Virus record (IMG/VR): IMGVR_UViG_3300048924_000100
Coordinates: 124,001 to 188,000 of that record
DNA length: 64,000 nt
Direction: 5' to 3' (one strand)
The translations under genes and the position numbers were made by a program. How positions within the stretch are numbered: the stretch's first letter is position 1; each line of letters starts with the position of its first letter. The notes beneath the pieces were generated by a model. The model worked only from the letters and a program-made list of their open reading frames with translations. It ran no database searches and had not been told where the DNA came from. Of this stretch, positions 4,013 through 13,156 are shown piece by piece.

Positions 4013-5314
4013 CTACTTGACAGCAGTAGCCAGGTTCAACTTAACCCGCTTACGACCAGCCTGGTGGTGGGCCTTCATCCGTTGCAACATGAACTCTGTT
4101 GGTACACGTACAACTTCCGCAGAGAGACGGGAAGCAAACATCGCCAACCCTTCACCCAAGCAGATCTTGCAGTAGTTACCTTCAGTGGTCATGCAGAACT
4201 GAGGTACACGCATCAGTACAGGCTTGTTAAGGATCTTCGCCAACACTTCTGGAGTGATCAGTACAGGCTCTTTGCCCTGCATGTAGTAACCACCCACCCA
4301 GCTATTGCCGTTCTCCTTAACCAGGGTCATCTCTTCAGTACGAGGAGTGCCACAGTCAGTGCCTTCAACCTTACCACGACCAATCAGACGCAGCGTTTCT
4401 TTTACCTGGCTACCACCTTCACCGGTTGCCATGGAACGAGAGTACGCACCTGCTACCGCGGCGTTGGTCTGTACCACGACCTGCTCAGGGTCAAGACCTT
4501 CATCGAGAGAACGAGGCAATGCAACCCACTCACCGCTTTCTTCATCCAGTTCGATACCGAAAGCAATGAACATACGTTTACGCGCAGTGTTGATGAACTT
4601 GTCGTTGATGAAGAAGTTCTTGCTCTTCCCCTTCATCATTTCTTCACGGTCCATTTGAACCAGTTCGTCAACGGCCGCTGTAAAGGCTACAGGGTCGTTC
4701 ATCTTGCCTTCAGCCTTGAGCTTGCTGAAGAGTTCGTCCTTACGCTTAAGTACCGCCTGAGAGACCGACAGGGCGTCCAGACCACCAGGCTTAACGAAGA
4801 ACGAACCCAACCCTTCCAGGTAGTAGCTGTTCTCAGTAAACTTCAGGCAGTCGTCAACGGAAGCCTTATCGTCAGGAACAGTTTCGCCTTCCTTTGGATT
4901 GTCCACCATGAGTCGGTTGATATGCCCCTCAATCAACTTCTTGGTGAAGCCAGCGTTGACGTAATCCACCTTACCTTTGAACGGTTCCCACCACAGCACG
5001 ATGTTGAACAACATCAGACCGAAGGTAGAGTCAACCGCCTTGCCCTTGAGCATTGGGTGGAAGTCCGCAGGAAACGAGAACTTGTCGTCCATCACAGCAA
5101 AGGGTTCATCTACCTTGCCGTCCAGTACAACAGTTTCGCTGTCAATGATTGCGTGGAACTTGCCTTTCTCAACAAAGACAGTCCACGGGATCTTCTTGAA
5201 GGCGCCAGCAGACTCAGCATCTTCGAACTGGATCGAGATGATTGACTGCACCGCCGCCTTGTTGGCGTAACCCAGGTTATTAAACCAGAGCTTGAGGAAA
5301 TCGAGTTTAGTCAT
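4013..5314 (-). CDS. Virion RNA polymerase beta'-like subunit (phiKZ gp80-like)
   Basis: Bridge-helix-like AYSRSMATGEGGSQVKETLR, beta' zinc-site residues DCGT...RVPQFC...YCKICLG, and trigger-loop-like region EFMLQRMKAHH. Confidence 0.8.
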   Translation of the reverse strand: MTKLDFLKLWFNNLGYANKAAVQSIISIQFEDAESAGAFKKIPWTVFVEKGKFHAIIDSETVVLDGKVDEPFAVMDDKFSFPADFHPMLKGKAVDSTFGLMLFNIVLWWEPFKGKVDYVNAGFTKKLIEGHINRLMVDNPKEGETVPDDKASVDDCLKFTENSYYLEGLGSFFVKPGGLDALSVSQAVLKRKDELFSKLKAEGKMNDPVAFTAAVDELVQMDREEMMKGKSKNFFINDKFINTARKRMFIAFGIELDEESGEWVALPRSLDEGLDPEQVVVQTNAAVAGAYSRSMATGEGGSQVKETLRLIGRGKVEGTDCGTPRTEEMTLVKENGNSWVGGYYMQGKEPVLITPEVLAKILNKPVLMRVPQFCMTTEGNYCKICLGEGLAMFASRLSAEVVRVPTEFMLQRMKAHHQAGRKRVKLNLATAVK

Positions 5315-6213
5315 GGGTTAAGGTCCAGGAGGCCAATCATCTTCTCAACTGCCAAGAGGGCCAGGTGATCATGAATGACATCGTTAATGAAGACCAGGAG
5401 CTGTTCACGAAGGGTATCGTTGTTCAACTCACTGATGAGGTACAGGCCCATGACCTCCTTGCCGTAAGCAACCTGGTTGTCCATCGACGGGTAATCGAGG
5501 AGCTTAGCCAGATCCGGCTTAAAGAAGTTCATGAGCGTGTCCACAGGGCTGCCTACGCGGCCGTTGTGAATGACGTGCTCATACGCCAAGGTGTTATCGA
5601 TAAGGGCCTTGTTCGCTCTTACACGCTTAATCAGGTTAGCAGGGATACCATCCTCCACATCACCGGTCAGCAGGTTGTCGCGAACCGCCTTTAAAGTTAC
5701 CTCGCTAACATCTTGTAGTAGCAACTCGTAATTGACGAGGGATACACTGTCACCCATGTATTTCTGGAAAATCAGTAGGAACCGATCAACAGGGGGAATG
5801 TCAACAGAATCCAGAATGTTACCCAAACCAATGACGTCTTCATAGCGGTCCATCTCGTGGAAGAAGTTGCCAACATGGATAAGTTCCTCCAGTCGTTCGT
5901 GAGTGACCTCATCCAGGTTGATAATAAAACCAAGACGGGTCAGTACGTCGATTATATTGTTGGCGATCAATTCGTAGATTTGTTTCTTCTTGATGTACGT
6001 GTCGAAGTTCTCATCGACGATGATTTCGGTGATTACGTTCTGTAGCAACGACTCGGGGGTGTTCAACAGAATTAAATTGAACCCGTCGGTCAATATTTTA
6101 GCTTGGAGGTCGGGTATAGAGGCCTTGAAGTCAACCCAGATACCACCGATGAGAGTAGTAGCGAAGTCTTCTTCCGCTTCCATCATCACCACTTCGTCAG
6201 TCTCAGTAAGCAT
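5311..6213 (-). CDS. Conserved hypothetical, probable virion protein (phiKZ gp79-like by position)
   Basis: ORF co-oriented with and overlapping the vRNAP gene. Start moved to ATG 6213 (AGGA RBS). Confidence 0.6.
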   Translation of the reverse strand: MLTETDEVVMMEAEEDFATTLIGGIWVDFKASIPDLQAKILTDGFNLILLNTPESLLQNVITEIIVDENFDTYIKKKQIYELIANNIIDVLTRLGFIINLDEVTHERLEELIHVGNFFHEMDRYEDVIGLGNILDSVDIPPVDRFLLIFQKYMGDSVSLVNYELLLQDVSEVTLKAVRDNLLTGDVEDGIPANLIKRVRANKALIDNTLAYEHVIHNGRVGSPVDTLMNFFKPDLAKLLDYPSMDNQVAYGKEVMGLYLISELNNDTLREQLLVFINDVIHDHLALLAVEKMIGLLDLNP

Positions 6214-6254
6214 TGGGACTTTCCTAACGTTAGTTAAACAGGGAATCATAGCAT

Positions 6255-7040
6255 ATGTCTACTAAACAAGCGCAGAAGAAAGCCAAGCGGGCTGCGGCGT
6301 CCAAACAGAAAAAGAAAGTGGCCAACAAAGAACGCAACTTCACCCAGTTCCTGTTGGGCCGTCGTCAAGAGGCTCGTGATGCAGCTTCACCGGAAGGTGT
6401 CCAGGCTGCTGAGGCGCGTCTGCGTTACGACATCGCTACCAAGGGCGTGATCCAAACGGCACTCGACCTGAAGCAGAACAAGCAGGAAACCACCGAATCC
6501 CTGACCAACGTCATTGTGCTGCAAGGCATCAATGAAATGATCCCGATCCTGGGCAACATCCACGGCGTGATCGAAGTTGTTGAAAAACTGGTCGGTATGA
6601 AGAAGATCGTCCTGAGCGAGCCACAACAGGCAGTGATCGACGCTTTCGACCGCCAGATCGTTTCCGTCGCCGAAGACGTTAACGCGATCTTCGTGTTCAT
6701 CAACAAGGAACAACAAGTCGAAGAGTACATCGACCTGTACGTCCACTACACCAACACCCTGGCCGAGATCATGCAGTTCGATATCCCGGCGGTGATGGAA
6801 GAGACCCTGCGTCCTAACGAGCTGGTCATCAACGAATACGTGACCGAACACAAGCACGAAGCCGAAACCAACTACGACTTTGGCATGCGTCTGCACGGCG
6901 AGCGTATTGCTCGTGTGGCTTCGCTGTATCGCACCGTTCAACCGTCGGGTGACGTCATCCCTGAAGGCGCCAAGCCTCTGGAAGGCGAACTGGTAGACGA
7001 AGACGCGTACGAAGACATCGGCGCTAAAGAAATCAACTAA
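6255..7040 (+). CDS. Hypothetical protein with Lys/Arg-rich N-terminus (261 aa)
   Basis: Strong phage codon bias; N-terminus MSTKQAQKKAKRAAASKQKKKVANKE. Confidence 0.75.
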   Translation: MSTKQAQKKAKRAAASKQKKKVANKERNFTQFLLGRRQEARDAASPEGVQAAEARLRYDIATKGVIQTALDLKQNKQETTESLTNVIVLQGINEMIPILGNIHGVIEVVEKLVGMKKIVLSEPQQAVIDAFDRQIVSVAEDVNAIFVFINKEQQVEEYIDLYVHYTNTLAEIMQFDIPAVMEETLRPNELVINEYVTEHKHEAETNYDFGMRLHGERIARVASLYRTVQPSGDVIPEGAKPLEGELVDEDAYEDIGAKEIN

Positions 7041-7064: not shown

Positions 7065-8813
7065 ATGAGTACTGAGCTCCCCCCAATTGATCCGTTGGAA
7101 GACCAGCCACCAGCGGTACCAAACCCTGTACCGGCTCCAGCTCCGGTAGCTGTAGCTGCGCCTGCTCCAACTCACCGTGATCCGCACACTGCGGTGAACA
7201 CCACGATGAAACAAGTCCTGGTTCCGGAAGATGAGGTCGTTCGTGACCTTACCGCCGAAGAACAGAAGGATGGCGGTTTCATGACTGTCTTCTTGGGCAA
7301 CCGTAAAGAAGACATCATCGCAGCTCAGAACGTTATCGCCCGCTGGTTGGGTTACACCGGCACCAAGGCCATGTGGGACGAGGAGCGTATTCCTGAATCA
7401 GTCTTCCGTAAGGCTGAATCAGACTGGCTCCAGTACATCGAAACGTCATGGCCTGGCAAGACGTCGGATCAAGTGTCCAACCACGCCAGCGATCTCTACG
7501 CCTTCATGTCGGAGATCCAGGATGAGCTGAAGGTCCGTACCTCGGTTATGAACGAGCCTGGCATTGCCAACTCCTCGAACCGTGGTGGCGTGAACACCGG
7601 TGACATCATCGGTAAGAAACCTTCTGCTTCTACCAAGGGTTTCTCCCAGCGCGAAAACATGCGTCGCCGTGCTGCGCGTAAAACGGGTTCTGGTGCTGAC
7701 AAGCTGTCTTACGACGTGCTGTGCCGTGACTCGTTCGCTACGTTCGCCTTCTCGCGTACCAACCATACCGAGATGGGCGCACTGATCAACGACATCCGTC
7801 GCACGTTGACTGGTTACGTTCAACAGATCGGTAACAACAGTGCTGTGCTGGCGCGTATCGCCTCGCTGCGCGTGATCTGGAACTTCATCGCTAAGCGTAT
7901 CACCAACTCGAGCGTAACAGACCTGGCTGACTTCAATCAGCTGTCTAACGTTATCCTGTTGACTGATATGGAAGCGATCATCACTGCACTGATCGAGTCG
8001 ACCAACAGCAAGGGTATCAACCTGAACCTGCGTTGCCTCTCCGGTAACTGTGACTGGGAAGCCTTCAAGCTGGTACAGGCGAGCAAGCTGTTGCGTCATC
8101 GTCACCACATCACGTCTGACGAAGACTCGGCTATCTACGCCAACCTGCTGAACGGCCACGCCAAGTACAGCATGGAAGAAACCCGTGCGCTGAGCCGTGC
8201 TTCGACCTACGGCCTGGACAGCAACCGTGTGTACAACGATGAGAAGTCGATCTACCTGGAATGTGCTCCGCCTACCCTGGCTGAAGCGTTCGGGGCGTTT
8301 GACTTCTTCATCGGTGAAATCAACCCGCAGTTGGCTGAGCTGCGTACGAAGTTGATTGACCCGGCTGAGTATCAGACTCAGGTCACCATGACCTACAACA
8401 ACCTCGGTTCCACGGAGTTCATCCACTGGGTACAGGCACAAGTTGACCTGCCAGCGGAAAACACCGACGAGGAAGAAACTGTGTTCCGCCGTAGCGAGAT
8501 GGACGCCATCGAGTTCAACGGCGGTATCATGGACGTCCTGCGTGATCAGGAAGACCTTAACCGTAACCTGGTGAAGTTCATCCTCAACAAGACACCGTAC
8601 ATGTCGCGTTCCTTTATGGGTGTGCGTAACTACGTGTGTCCGAAGTGCCGGAAGAACATGGCCGACCTGGAAGACCCTGAAGGCCTGCTGGATCGGAAGT
8701 TGGGCTACACGCCAATTGACCCTGTGATGAGTTTTTTTACCCTCACCCAGTGGGCGATGCTCAAGCAAACGGCCGTCCAAAATCAAATCAAGTCCGAAGC
8801 CCTCTCGGAATAA
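7065..8813 (+). CDS. Putative tail/baseplate-hub assembly chaperone (582 aa, zero-frame product)
   Basis: AAGGA RBS. Two Cys pairs (NLRCLSGNC, YVCPKC) and C-terminal PIDPVMSFF resemble T4 gp26/gp51-type hub assembly proteins (inference, no search run). Confidence 0.5.
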   Translation: MSTELPPIDPLEDQPPAVPNPVPAPAPVAVAAPAPTHRDPHTAVNTTMKQVLVPEDEVVRDLTAEEQKDGGFMTVFLGNRKEDIIAAQNVIARWLGYTGTKAMWDEERIPESVFRKAESDWLQYIETSWPGKTSDQVSNHASDLYAFMSEIQDELKVRTSVMNEPGIANSSNRGGVNTGDIIGKKPSASTKGFSQRENMRRRAARKTGSGADKLSYDVLCRDSFATFAFSRTNHTEMGALINDIRRTLTGYVQQIGNNSAVLARIASLRVIWNFIAKRITNSSVTDLADFNQLSNVILLTDMEAIITALIESTNSKGINLNLRCLSGNCDWEAFKLVQASKLLRHRHHITSDEDSAIYANLLNGHAKYSMEETRALSRASTYGLDSNRVYNDEKSIYLECAPPTLAEAFGAFDFFIGEINPQLAELRTKLIDPAEYQTQVTMTYNNLGSTEFIHWVQAQVDLPAENTDEEETVFRRSEMDAIEFNGGIMDVLRDQEDLNRNLVKFILNKTPYMSRSFMGVRNYVCPKCRKNMADLEDPEGLLDRKLGYTPIDPVMSFFTLTQWAMLKQTAVQNQIKSEALSE

Positions 8814-9286
8814 TCCCCCGAGTAGACAATCGGATTGTCTTCAGCCCAGTGTTCAATCAGGTTAACAACCAGCTGCTGGGGAAGTCCATCAAAGGTCTTA
8901 CCCCAGAAGCCATGGTGTTTAACGAGGGCATGTTGCATGACTTGAACATGAACTACTACACCCCGGCTACCATGGACCCGTTCTCTTCAGTTGCTTACAT
9001 CCCTGAGGAGAACACGTTCTACCATGAGTGGTCAATTAAGTCTGTCGCTAAGAAGTATGGGTTCTACAAACTGCATGAGATTCTGCCTTTGCGGGATTAC
9101 ATGGAGATGCCCATGTTCCTTATCGATGACTTGATCAGTGGTGTGACTGAAGGACGTTCTGAGCGAGACAAGATTGACAACCCACCTGATGCCAGTGGTA
9201 ACCACAAACTGCCTAAGGTGGCGGACAGCAATAAAGACTTGGCTGAAATAATGCGTCAACTGGGTTTGGACAAGAAATTGGTCTAA
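8738..9286 (+). CDS. Downstream -1-frame ORF, probably translated as a frameshift extension of 7065..8813
   Basis: Frame is open from 8720 (after TGA 8717-8719) to 9286. The only early start is GTG 8750, with no RBS. Slippery T TTT TTT at 8732-8738. Confidence 0.6.
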   Translation, partial: YPHPVGDAQANGRPKSNQVRSPLGIIPRVDNRIVFSPVFNQVNNQLLGKSIKGLTPEAMVFNEGMLHDLNMNYYTPATMDPFSSVAYIPEENTFYHEWSIKSVAKKYGFYKLHEILPLRDYMEMPMFLIDDLISGVTEGRSERDKIDNPPDASGNHKLPKVADSNKDLAEIMRQLGLDKKLV

Positions 9287-9296
9287 TCACTGCTAG

Positions 9297-9332
9297 CCCC
9301 TAGGGTCCCAACGGGCCCTAGGGGTATAGCCG
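9297..9332 (+). terminator. Hairpin plus TATAGCCG
   Basis: CCCCTAGGGTCC-CAAC-GGGCCCTAGGGG, then TATAGCCG, 10 nt after the stop at 9286. Confidence 0.75.
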
Positions 9333-11263: not shown

Positions 11264-13135
11264 TTACGCCGCTTCTTTCAATACTTCTGGTAATACTTGT
11301 GCTTGTCGTGCTTCACGTTCTGCTTTGGCTTTCTCTGCACTTTCACGCAGTTGCTTCAACATGTCCCCCATACCCAGTTCTTCCAGACCTTTCTCGAAGT
11401 CGGATTGCAGGTTGTCTGCTTGTGGGAAACGGAACAGGTCATGACCCAAGCCCATGGCATTCGCCTGAGTACTGCTGGCATAGTTCACGGCTATCTCCCG
11501 GAACTTCATGTCGTTAGCACCCTGAATGGCATAGACCTCCATCTGAGTCGTTTTGTTACTGACGTTATCGGCCAGTGTACCTGTTGGGTAAGCACCTTCA
11601 ACGTCAAGGTCAGACGTGCTACCACGACCCGAACTGAGTACATCGTCCAGACCAATAAACATCGCTCGGCCCATGTCTGCGTTCTTCTCAGTATCGAGGA
11701 GGGCAATCCAGTTGTCGAGGGTTGGTAGACGATCAGTAAAGGTCTTGTCACGTTTAGACGGCGTACTGCCCCAGACGTAACCATGCTCACGTGCAAGGAA
11801 CGACAGGGTGTCCGAGATCAGACGTGGCTGTGAAACAAAGTTGAAGTATTCCGAATAACGCAACAGCATTGGAATCGACAGCGAGAAGTCAAGCGTTTTC
11901 TCGTTGATCTCTTCAATAGGCCAGTTGTCGGCGATGTTGTACATCGAATACAGGTAAGGATGGTCCTTCTGCATATATCGATGCCACTGACCCGAGCCTG
12001 GACCCTTGCTCATGCCCTCTTCGGTATACAGCTTACCCTTGACCTCTTCACGAGTAGCAATGGCCTCCAGCGAGTAACCCTCGAGCTTACCCGACGAGAA
12101 ACGTTTAATAGCATAACCCGACATAGCGTCAGCCCATTGCCACTTAGCCGGAGTACGAACCGTTGGAAACTTCTCTTGTGGTTCCAGAGGCGTCTTGTCG
12201 CCGTTCTCCTTGATCTTGTGCGTACGACCAAGGTTCAGCTCGTAACTGCGATACTCTTTCGGTACCGATGGATCACTGTAGACGTCTGCGAGGTTATAAC
12301 CTTCACACCTGAGAGCGCGTTCACAGGCTTCCATGTCATAACCAGCGTTCCAGCTCAGTACCCAGTCCGGCTCCCATTCGTGGAACTTCTGAATGCACGC
12401 AAAAGCAATCTGACCAGGAGTATCGAACAACTCATACTCGATCACACACTTGCGACGGTCAACGTGTTCCTGGAGGTATTTCTCTTCAGCTGCTTTTAAC
12501 CGAGCAATGATATCAGCATCAGTTAATTTAACCTTGGGGTCAATCCTGTCCTGACGACTCTGGAACCAGCTGCGTTGTCCTGCCCAGTAAGCTTTACCCT
12601 TCATAGTGACCGAGGCCATCATGATTGGCTTGACTTCACCCGGAAACTCCATATCCGCTTCAACGTCGAACGCTGCTACCGAATAGGGTTCCTTTTCCTG
12701 ATACTCTGCGTACTTCTTAAAGAACTGTTGCTTGAAGTGCACCGGTGTGGTCTGGTCCAAACCAAACACGTACTGGATACCCTTGCCCGACTTGACGTCA
12801 TAGATCGTTGCACCGCGGTCAGCTACCCCAAATAGCTGCTTGCGTACTTCAAACGGAATGTCACGACGGGTGCTGCGGTATTCACGGCAGTAACGTTCTT
12901 CCAGATAGTCTTTAGGCTGGTTGAACTTGCGATGCTGCTCTTTGACCAGGTGCCAAGGCTGCTTATAGTTCTCGTAAGACTGGAACACATTGCTGCGACT
13001 TCCGTCTTCGTGAATGTTGGTAATCTTTGCACTCAGCAAGTCTTTGCTCTTGTCAAAACGATGCTCTGTGTAGATGGCATGTTTGCAGACACGAGCAATA
13101 ATAGGTGATAGGTTTTCTGCGACAGTTTGTGTCAT
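11264..13135 (-). CDS. Split family-B DNA polymerase, 3'-5' exonuclease plus motif-A half (phiKZ gp82-like)
   Basis: ExoI FDVEAD, ExoII WNAGYD, ExoIII YNIAD and pol motif A SDLDVEGAYP. No motif B or C follows, as expected for the split PolB of phiKZ-like phages. Start ATG 13135 (AGGA RBS); 13150 is possible. Confidence 0.85.
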   Translation of the reverse strand: MTQTVAENLSPIIARVCKHAIYTEHRFDKSKDLLSAKITNIHEDGSRSNVFQSYENYKQPWHLVKEQHRKFNQPKDYLEERYCREYRSTRRDIPFEVRKQLFGVADRGATIYDVKSGKGIQYVFGLDQTTPVHFKQQFFKKYAEYQEKEPYSVAAFDVEADMEFPGEVKPIMMASVTMKGKAYWAGQRSWFQSRQDRIDPKVKLTDADIIARLKAAEEKYLQEHVDRRKCVIEYELFDTPGQIAFACIQKFHEWEPDWVLSWNAGYDMEACERALRCEGYNLADVYSDPSVPKEYRSYELNLGRTHKIKENGDKTPLEPQEKFPTVRTPAKWQWADAMSGYAIKRFSSGKLEGYSLEAIATREEVKGKLYTEEGMSKGPGSGQWHRYMQKDHPYLYSMYNIADNWPIEEINEKTLDFSLSIPMLLRYSEYFNFVSQPRLISDTLSFLAREHGYVWGSTPSKRDKTFTDRLPTLDNWIALLDTEKNADMGRAMFIGLDDVLSSGRGSTSDLDVEGAYPTGTLADNVSNKTTQMEVYAIQGANDMKFREIAVNYASSTQANAMGLGHDLFRFPQADNLQSDFEKGLEELGMGDMLKQLRESAEKAKAEREARQAQVLPEVLKEAA

Positions 13136-13148
13136 GATTTTATCCTGC

Positions 13149-13156
13149 ATTTTATG
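13149..13156 (+). promoter_or_regulatory. Candidate late promoter for the head operon
   Basis: ATTTTATG followed by palindrome TAGCGCTA, the same pairing seen upstream of the capsid gene. Confidence 0.4.

Follow-up and report, generated by a model that had tools for sequence, protein, structure and literature searches.

A run of seven T's near the end of a 582-residue gene is very probably a programmed -1 frameshift site that is conserved across the phiKZ-like nucleus-forming phages, including phiKZ itself, and that yields a short and a 740-residue long form of a protein whose core has the predicted fold of the T4 baseplate-hub assembly proteins gp26 and gp51. The site is not annotated in any of the records that we opened, and full-text literature searches, together with several targeted look-ups, found no mention of this frameshift or of phiKZ gp77/gp76.4. 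The window analyzed here is a 64,000-nucleotide stretch of a metagenome assembly (positions 124,001 to 188,000 of IMG/VR record IMGVR_UViG_3300048924_000100), and all features described below lie on its plus strand. The first-pass annotation, made from the sequence alone, proposed a -1 ribosomal frameshift producing a G/GT-like chaperone pair; each of its statements on the sequence holds, and each of the tests it suggested that could be performed by computation came out in favor, although, as discussed below, the G/GT comparison is valid only as an analogy of arrangement.

The first of the two open reading frames, ORF1 (7065-8813, 582 aa), is the ortholog of phiKZ gp77 (phrog_4585). Its codons read ATG (8727) AGT TTT TTT ACC, so that T TTT TTT (8732-8738) is an X XXY YYZ heptamer in phase with ORF1, with the P-site TTT at 8733-8735 and the A-site TTT at 8736-8738. 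A TGA at 8717-8719 closes the -1 frame, which is then open from 8720 to the stop at 9284-9286. Slippage at the heptamer would join residues 1-558 of ORF1 to a trans-frame extension of 182 codons plus stop (8738-9286), giving 740 aa with the junction VMSFF-YPHPVGDAQ (junction peptide ...MSFFYPHPVGDAQ... in the window; ...LSTFFYFGGLEVK... and, for junction-spanning peptides, ...STFFYFGGLEVK... in phiKZ). In the dual-coding overlap (8738-8813), frame 0 encodes the last 24 residues of the short form, a C-terminal helix, whereas frame -1 encodes YPHPVGD..RSPL. The stretch that follows (8814-8911) is usually annotated as intergenic but is open and coding in the -1 frame only, and the remainder (8912-9286) is a conserved helical C-terminal domain (phrog_19747, the equivalent of phiKZ gp76.4) that gene callers report as a separate small ORF. 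A GC-rich inverted repeat (9297-9324), located 11 nt after the stop of the extension, may mark the end of the transcription unit; it was not called by a simple terminator scan, but in phiKZ, a nanopore cDNA contig ends within about 35 nt after the gp76.4 stop, where a GC-rich hairpin lies.

The conservation of this arrangement is far beyond chance. We examined 57 related loci, many of them near-duplicates but representing about 25 lineages below 60% ORF1 identity, down to about 20%, including those of EL, OBP, RisingSun, Vibrio, Aeromonas and Klebsiella phages, phiEaH2, 201phi2-1 and phiKZ (gp77 and gp76.4). In all 57, the second ORF is in the -1 frame and open from before the site to its stop, and in 55, an in-phase T TTT TTN is retained, as T TTT TTT, TTC or TTA; the exception is a single 201phi2-1-like lineage (two loci, L063/L064) with the imperfect heptamer G TTT TTT. 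The extension is 159-182 codons long in every locus where it is complete, one locus running off the end of its contig. A tblastn search with the -1 translation produced single-piece alignments that begin at the slip site and span both annotated genes in about 50 GenBank phages. The 686-aa ortholog in phiEaH2 initially resembled an in-frame fusion, but the extra length is N-terminal, and the gene has the same frameshift arrangement. The phrog_4585 family was not detected in the non-chimallin jumbo phages phiR1-37 and AR9, so that its spread beyond Chimalliviridae was not shown.

Selection on the site is apparent at synonymous positions. The codon preceding the two Phe codons is AGT, AAT, GCT, ACT or GTT, such that the amino acid varies but the third base is T, although T-ending synonymous codons make up only 12-66% elsewhere in ORF1. 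The first Phe codon is always TTT, even though TTT accounts for 0-36% of Phe codons in the window's clade, and outside the site, ORF1 of the window uses TTT twice and TTC 18 times. Immediately after the slip, the -1 frame contains a PxP motif that is invariant outside the phiKZ/201phi2-1 clade, while the frame-0 residues vary; mean pairwise identity is 0.31 in frame -1, compared with 0.23 in frame 0 and 0.22 in the +1 control. The stretch 8861-8911, upstream of ATG 8912, varies by -1 codon position as 0.30/0.19/0.51, much like the domain itself at 0.25/0.17/0.38. By contrast, no conserved initiation signal for the second ORF was found. In the window, the only early start is GTG 8750, with no Shine-Dalgarno-like motif upstream; across genomes, start codons are not conserved, several genomes having none until codon +56 to +68 and phiKZ none up to +75, and Shine-Dalgarno-like motifs are mostly absent. 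The 71 homologs of the extension among 1.84 billion representative proteins are all 61-172 aa long, their called N-termini scatter over profile positions 1-115, and none is fused in frame to anything.

RNA stimulators, which are common but not obligatory at such sites, were not found. RNAalifold, applied to three clades, detected no conserved pairs in the window's clade and only weak pairs in the others, single-sequence folds compared with shuffled sequences gave z-scores from -0.7 to +1.5, and no upstream Shine-Dalgarno-like stimulator was detected in any clade. The efficiency of frameshifting, therefore, may be low or may depend on an unknown stimulator.

The predicted structure of ORF1 provides a functional lead. 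The model (pLDDT 84, pTM 0.84) shows a disordered P/A-rich N-terminus followed by a confidently folded body, of which residues 196-564 align with 257 of the 260 residues of a T4_baseplate (PF12322; gp26/gp51) cluster model at TM 0.73. In BFVD, a 'Baseplate hub assembly protein, T4-like' entry matches at probability 1.0 and E 1.7e-3, and in a feature search of the ESM Atlas, 47 of 100 hits fall in clusters carrying PF12322. This connection, which was surmised in the first-pass annotation, rests on structure only, with both sides of the comparisons being predicted models. The PF12322 HMM, which does find T4 genes 26 and 51, has no hit for ORF1, for 25 orthologs or for the whole phage genome, and Pfam scans of ORF1, the extension and the 25 orthologs recovered nothing. 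A Foldseek search of solved structures found no relative (best E 4.4), and a wide VIA-align search yielded only generic helical hairpins (best Z 6.8). The full-length ORF1 profile aligned by hhalign to gp26 and gp51 with only insignificant local matches. Four Cys residues of ORF1 (C324, C329, C525 and C528) are invariant, and T4 gp26 (CTC plus CPEC) and gp51 (CPKC plus CC) could carry a similar two-knuckle site, but hhalign aligns the ORF1 CPKC with the gp26 CPEC near its C-terminus at only 59% probability. The extension modeled alone is of low confidence (pLDDT 59), and co-folding it with ORF1 gave no answer.

Taking these findings together, we consider the following scenario likely, although it is not yet supported by protein-level data. 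Most ribosomes translating ORF1 would terminate at 8811-8813 and make the 582-aa protein, whereas a fraction would slip back one base when the two tRNA-Phe sit on TTT TTT (8733-8738), re-pair on T TTT TT (8732-8737), and read on from TAC 8738 in the -1 frame to 9283. The resulting 740-aa protein would share residues 1-558 with the short form but replace its last 24-residue helix with the 182-residue extension, consisting of a PxP linker, a short beta hairpin and a small helical domain. Under this scenario, what databases list as a separate small gene (phiKZ gp76.4, EL gp048 and others) is the C-terminal part of the long isoform. Given the predicted gp26/gp51-like fold of the shared body, the pair most likely acts as non-virion tail or baseplate-hub assembly factors made in a fixed ratio, as lambda G/GT are; that the slip is ribosomal, its efficiency, and the assembly function are all inferences.

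Of the alternatives, transcriptional slippage, whereby the phage multisubunit RNA polymerase adds one U in the run of 6-7 U and ribosomes read the edited mRNA normally to make the same long protein, seems unlikely but is not excluded. The site is a homopolymer run, the conserved T before TTT TTT lengthens this run as well as completing the heptamer, no RNA stimulator of ribosomal frameshifting was found, and chimallivirus RNA polymerases are highly divergent, with unknown slippage behavior. However, runs of 6-7 appear short for productive polymerase slippage, which is typically efficient at 8-9 or more, and most clades have only six T followed by C, whereas T TTT TTC and T TTT TTA are classical ribosomal heptamers. 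RNA-library contigs from four phiKZ runs span gp77 to gp76.4 with the T7 run unchanged, although contigs can hide a minority of transcripts with an extra U. Still less likely is that the second ORF is an ordinary gene with its own start (GTG 8750, ATG 8912 or similar), the heptamer and the -1 overlap being by-products of a conserved Phe-Phe. Every GenBank record that we opened annotates it this way, in EL an AAGGA motif precedes the annotated TTG, and a Met is common around codons +60 to +68; nevertheless, the 56-75 codons that lack any ATG, GTG or TTG in several genomes are conserved as protein with a coding signature, and a conserved Phe-Phe does not explain the choice of TTT against codon bias, the T in the preceding wobble position under five different amino acids, or the PxP in the -1 frame. 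Finally, although homopolymer runs are error-prone and the window comes from a metagenome assembly, a sequencing artifact or decayed gene is refuted by the comparative data, given that the same break occurs at the same codon in more than 50 independently sequenced genomes and contigs from many laboratories and platforms, that no in-frame version exists among the 1.84 billion representative proteins or among 22 ORF1 homologs, and that the frame-0 tail after the site is itself partly conserved (TQ ... EALS) and ends at a conserved distance.

The arrangement is reminiscent of the lambda G/GT and P2 E/E' tail assembly chaperone pairs (Xu, Hendrix and Duda 2004), where a slippery heptamer likewise lies near the 3' end of the first ORF, the second ORF is in the -1 frame without a start of its own, the two products share an N-terminal body but differ at the C-terminus, and no in-frame fusion occurs in nature, which implies that a ratio of short to long form is needed; a link to tail morphogenesis is likely. 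However, ORF1 is an analog rather than a member of this group: at 582 aa, against about 100-150 for G-like proteins, it is four times larger than G, and it matches no tail-assembly-chaperone family, the only hint being a weak TM 0.55 match of PF08748 over 103 residues of an ortholog's model. Furthermore, it does not lie between the tube and tape-measure genes but beside genes for replication and transcription, the neighbors in the window, EL, phiKZ and phiEaH2 being the virion RNA polymerase beta subunit, a head protein, DNA polymerase and a helicase. Escherichia coli dnaX tau/gamma and IS elements similarly employ tandem slippage on an X XXY YYZ heptamer, but those sites have strong stimulators, an upstream SD-like element and a downstream hairpin or pseudoknot, none of which was detected here, and in dnaX the shift shortens the product, whereas here it lengthens it.

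Neither ORF1 nor T4 gp26/gp51 appear to be part of the solved virion: phiKZ gp77 is not named in the text of the phiKZ structural atlas (PMC13250141), and T4 gp26/gp51 are regarded as chaperones or cofactors (PMC9024508). T4 also makes a short and a long version, but from two paralogous genes and without a frameshift, with gp51 carrying an extra C-terminal domain, phrog_634. ORF1 is more than twice as long, with an added N-terminal region and insertions, and the extension profile showed no similarity to the gp51 C-terminal domain. It is conceivable, although at present this is no more than a tentative hypothesis, that the frameshift pair is the chimallivirus counterpart of the gp26 (short) and gp51 (long) pair, such that hub or tail assembly in these large contractile-tail phages needs a short and a C-terminally extended form of one T4_baseplate-fold protein in a set ratio, supplied in T4 by two genes and in phiKZ-like phages by one gene through recoding placed exactly at the end of the shared fold. 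Such a scenario would extend the rule of a conserved frameshift in tail assembly genes to the lineage where it was thought to be missing and would give the long-obscure gp26/gp51 proteins a testable chaperone model.

phiKZ and its relatives, which form a phage nucleus, are candidates for therapy and now have whole-virion cryo-EM atlases, are among the most intensively studied phages. If the frameshift is real, this is a clean natural case of a -1 site kept, without a detectable RNA stimulator, in every lineage examined, the heptamer being imperfect in one, which is useful for studying minimal frameshift signals and for tuning frameshift predictors. In that case, too, one gene conserved in every lineage examined here makes two proteins, the long one missing from the annotation of every record that we opened; the small 'hypothetical protein' gene listed in those records (phiKZ gp76.4, EL gp048 and others) is not a gene of its own, and its annotated starts are arbitrary; and knock-down, transposon and proteomic screens that treat gp77 and gp76.4 as separate genes need re-reading. 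A protein of unknown function would gain a concrete hypothesis, namely, baseplate-hub or tail assembly, through its predicted T4 gp26/gp51 fold.

In the frame of ORF1 (7065-8813, 582 aa), the window reads ...CCT GTG ATG AGT TTT TTT ACC CTC..., with the seven T's at 8732-8738, so that T TTT TTT is an X XXY YYZ heptamer in phase. The -1 frame is closed by a TGA at 8717-8719 and is then open from 8720 to the stop at 9284-9286. A tandem -1 slip after Phe557-Phe558 would continue with TAC 8738 and yield 558 + 182 = 740 residues with the junction ...VMSFF-YPHPVGDAQ, as proposed in the first-pass annotation, all the descriptive statements of which proved correct. These include the preference of ORF1 for TTC, used 18 times outside the site against two for TTT, and the absence of an SD-like motif upstream of GTG 8750, the only early start in the -1 frame. 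A 446-codon antisense ORF (7446-8786, minus strand) covers most of ORF1 but is probably a mechanical by-product of codon usage.

The arrangement is conserved far beyond the window. A tblastn search of GenBank phages with the -1 translation (8720-9283) gave 58 records, in about 50 of which one uninterrupted alignment starts at query residues 1-5, that is, at the slip site, and spans two annotated genes. We compared 16 annotated loci and 34 IMG/VR loci, the latter found through a protein pattern that does not constrain codon choice; in all 50 loci, plus the window, the second ORF is in the -1 frame, which is open from upstream of the site to the ORF2 stop. The extension is 159-182 codons long in every locus where it is complete (one locus runs off its contig end), and the site is T TTT TTT, T TTT TTC or, in Kc263, T TTT TTA, always in phase. 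Many of these loci are near-duplicates, but by our estimate from the identity lists, they represent about 25 lineages with less than 60% ORF1 identity, and ORF1 identity to the window falls to about 20%. A profile search then identified the phiKZ orthologue, gp77 (PHIKZ077; phrog_4585 at E 9e-196), which ends ...TCA ACT TTT TTT ACT TTG... and the -1 frame of which runs through the 218-nt 'intergenic' gap into PHIKZ076.4. The same arrangement holds in 201phi2-1 and in the very distant phiEaH2 (GTT TTT TTC). The only deviation is a pair of 201phi2-1-like metagenome contigs (L063 and L064, about 2868-2876) with ACG TTT TTT, where the base preceding TTT TTT is G and the P-site tRNA could not re-pair perfectly; nevertheless, their -1 frame is still open and conserved; this might be a natural low-efficiency variant or a sign that single-tRNA slippage is enough.

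Both the site and the -1 frame show evidence of selection. The codon before Phe-Phe is AGT, AAT, GCT, ACT or GTT, such that the amino acid changes but the third base stays T, whereas T-ending synonymous codons make up only 12-66% of those amino acids elsewhere in ORF1. Likewise, the first Phe codon is always TTT, although TTT is the minor Phe codon in most of these genes. Immediately after the site, the bases NNC CNN NNC CNN are fixed, so that the -1 frame reads x-P-x-P in every member outside the phiKZ/201phi2-1 clade, while the frame-0 residues at these positions vary (T/I/D/A/V, then L/H/R/Q). Mean pairwise identity over the 22 overlap codons is 0.31 in frame -1, 0.23 in frame 0 and 0.22 in the +1 control. 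In the window's clade, the variability by -1 codon position is flat in the overlap (0.24/0.22/0.22), consistent with dual coding, but is 0.30/0.19/0.51 in 8861-8911, upstream of the first ATG, which matches the coding pattern of the downstream domain (0.25/0.17/0.38). At the end of ORF1, the highly conserved block GAAGCCCTCTC, which is nearly invariant at the nucleotide level in the window's clade, EL and RisingSun, encodes EALS in frame 0 and RSPL in frame -1; a simple scan calls a terminator-like hairpin (TCCGAGAGGGCTTCGGA) over it on the minus strand (8793-8809).

With respect to the mechanism, T TTT TTY and T TTT TTA are classical tandem-slippage heptamers for tRNA-Phe (and tRNA-Leu), but we found no stimulator. 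RNAalifold gave no conserved pairs for 17 sequences of the window's clade and only weak pairs for two other clades, single-sequence folds of the 60 nt after the spacer were no more stable than shuffles (z from -0.7 to +1.5), and by eye, no SD-like element precedes the site in the window sequence. Polymerase slippage on the same run would give the same protein and cannot be excluded, but it is less likely because most clades have only six T's. In addition, contigs from four RNA libraries of phiKZ infections cross gp77-gp76.4 in one piece with T7 intact, although contigs hide minority species. One nanopore cDNA contig ends within about 35 nt after the gp76.4 stop, followed by an A tail, which fits a transcript 3' end after the extension. 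phiKZ has a hairpin after gp76.4, where this contig ends, comparable to a GC-rich inverted repeat (CCCCTAGGGTCCC / GGGCCCTAGGGG, 3-nt loop) that lies in the window at 9297-9324, 11 nt after the stop of the extension; the latter has no immediate T run and was not called by a simple terminator scan.

Independent initiation of the second ORF appears very unlikely to explain the data. The ATG, GTG and TTG codons in the -1 frame are not conserved in position, and several genomes, namely RisingSun, Aeromonas D3, CF8, pEt-SU, Kc263 and those represented by our loci L027, L047 and L049, have none before codon +56 to +68, whereas phiKZ has none up to +75; SD-like motifs are mostly missing. Annotators placed the ORF2 start anywhere from 9 to 237 nt after the ORF1 stop. 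A profile of the extension finds 71 proteins among 1.84 billion representatives, all 61-172 aa long, with called N-termini scattered over profile positions 1-115 and none fused in frame to ORF1 or to anything else; the 22 ORF1 homologues found are all 535-589 aa. The complete absence of in-frame fusions, despite a single-base distance, suggests that both the short and the long form are needed, the same argument that is used for lambda G/GT.

The identity of the protein is less clear. Neither part matches Pfam, and the PHROG families are of unknown function. AlphaFold2 with 36 sequences gives a confident ORF1 model (pLDDT 84, pTM 0.84), with disordered residues 1-30 and a final helix at 553-581 that begins at the slip site. 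The disordered, proline- and alanine-rich N-terminus (7065-7200, ORF1 residues 1-45) probably explains the 'putative ZipA-like cell division protein' label on the orthologues in RisingSun, Joad, LAh10 and ZPAH34, a name that nothing else supports. No solved structure resembles the model, but three independent comparisons with predicted structures point to the T4 gp26/gp51 family (PF12322 T4_baseplate): BFVD 'Baseplate hub assembly protein, bacteriophage T4-like' matches at probability 1.0, E 1.7e-3; in the ESM Atlas feature search, 47 of 100 neighbours are in PF12322-bearing clusters; and in the Atlas shape search, a 260-residue PF12322 cluster model aligns over 257 residues to ORF1 196-564 with TM 0.73. 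The shared predicted fold therefore ends within a few residues of Phe557-Phe558. Sequence support is weak: the PF12322 HMM does not hit, and hhalign of the last 100 residues reaches only 59% probability, aligning CPKC (525-528) with the C-terminal CPEC knuckle of gp26. The four Cys of ORF1 are invariant, and gp26 and gp51 each have two Cys pairs about 100 residues apart. phiKZ gp77 is not named in the text of the phiKZ structural atlas, which reports 40 virion proteins (PMC13250141), and this fits a non-virion assembly factor, the role proposed for T4 gp26/gp51 (PMC9024508). The extension alone models poorly (pLDDT 59, although a helical region at residues 100-150 scores 75-83), and co-folding it with ORF1 gave no answer.

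The arrangement works like lambda G/GT or P2 E/E', with one body and two C-termini set by a -1 slip. However, it is not a member of those families, failing on size, on family membership and on genomic position, given that its neighbours are the virion RNA polymerase beta subunit, a head protein, DNA polymerase and a helicase. In the window, which comes from a 214-kb EL-like chimallivirus assembled from a root metagenome (completeness estimate 93%), the gene order at 4013-6249 (-), 6255-7040 (+) and 11264-13150 (-) matches phiKZ gp80 (virion RNA polymerase beta), gp79 (head protein), gp78 and gp77, followed here by a DNA polymerase. Structurally, as far as the predicted models show, the protein is an enlarged relative of T4 gp26/gp51. 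T4 provides a short form (gp26) and a longer form (gp51, with an extra C-terminal domain, phrog_634) from two paralogous genes; the idea that the chimallivirus frameshift pair is the one-gene equivalent is attractive but speculative, and the two C-terminal domains show no similarity. T4 gene 26 (NC_000866, 115802-116428) is itself annotated with a second product, 26', from the 3' part of the gene (115802-116089), so that the T4 member of the fold family also makes two related proteins, apparently by internal initiation.

Taken together, these findings confirm the initial observation and make a recoding event that fuses ORF1 to the downstream ORF very likely, albeit still without protein-level proof; if so, the event is most probably ribosomal, whereas an assembly-factor function related to T4 gp26/gp51 is plausible. 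None of the annotated records that we examined marks a slippage or a joined CDS here, and within the incomplete literature searched, we found no paper mentioning PHIKZ077 or gp76.4, or a frameshift in Chimalliviridae at this locus, nor the term 'ribosomal frameshifting' in the papers on the phage nucleus or chimallin that were screened. The mechanism is of a well-known kind; what is new is the gene family, its family-wide conservation, and the correction of the annotation of a model phage.
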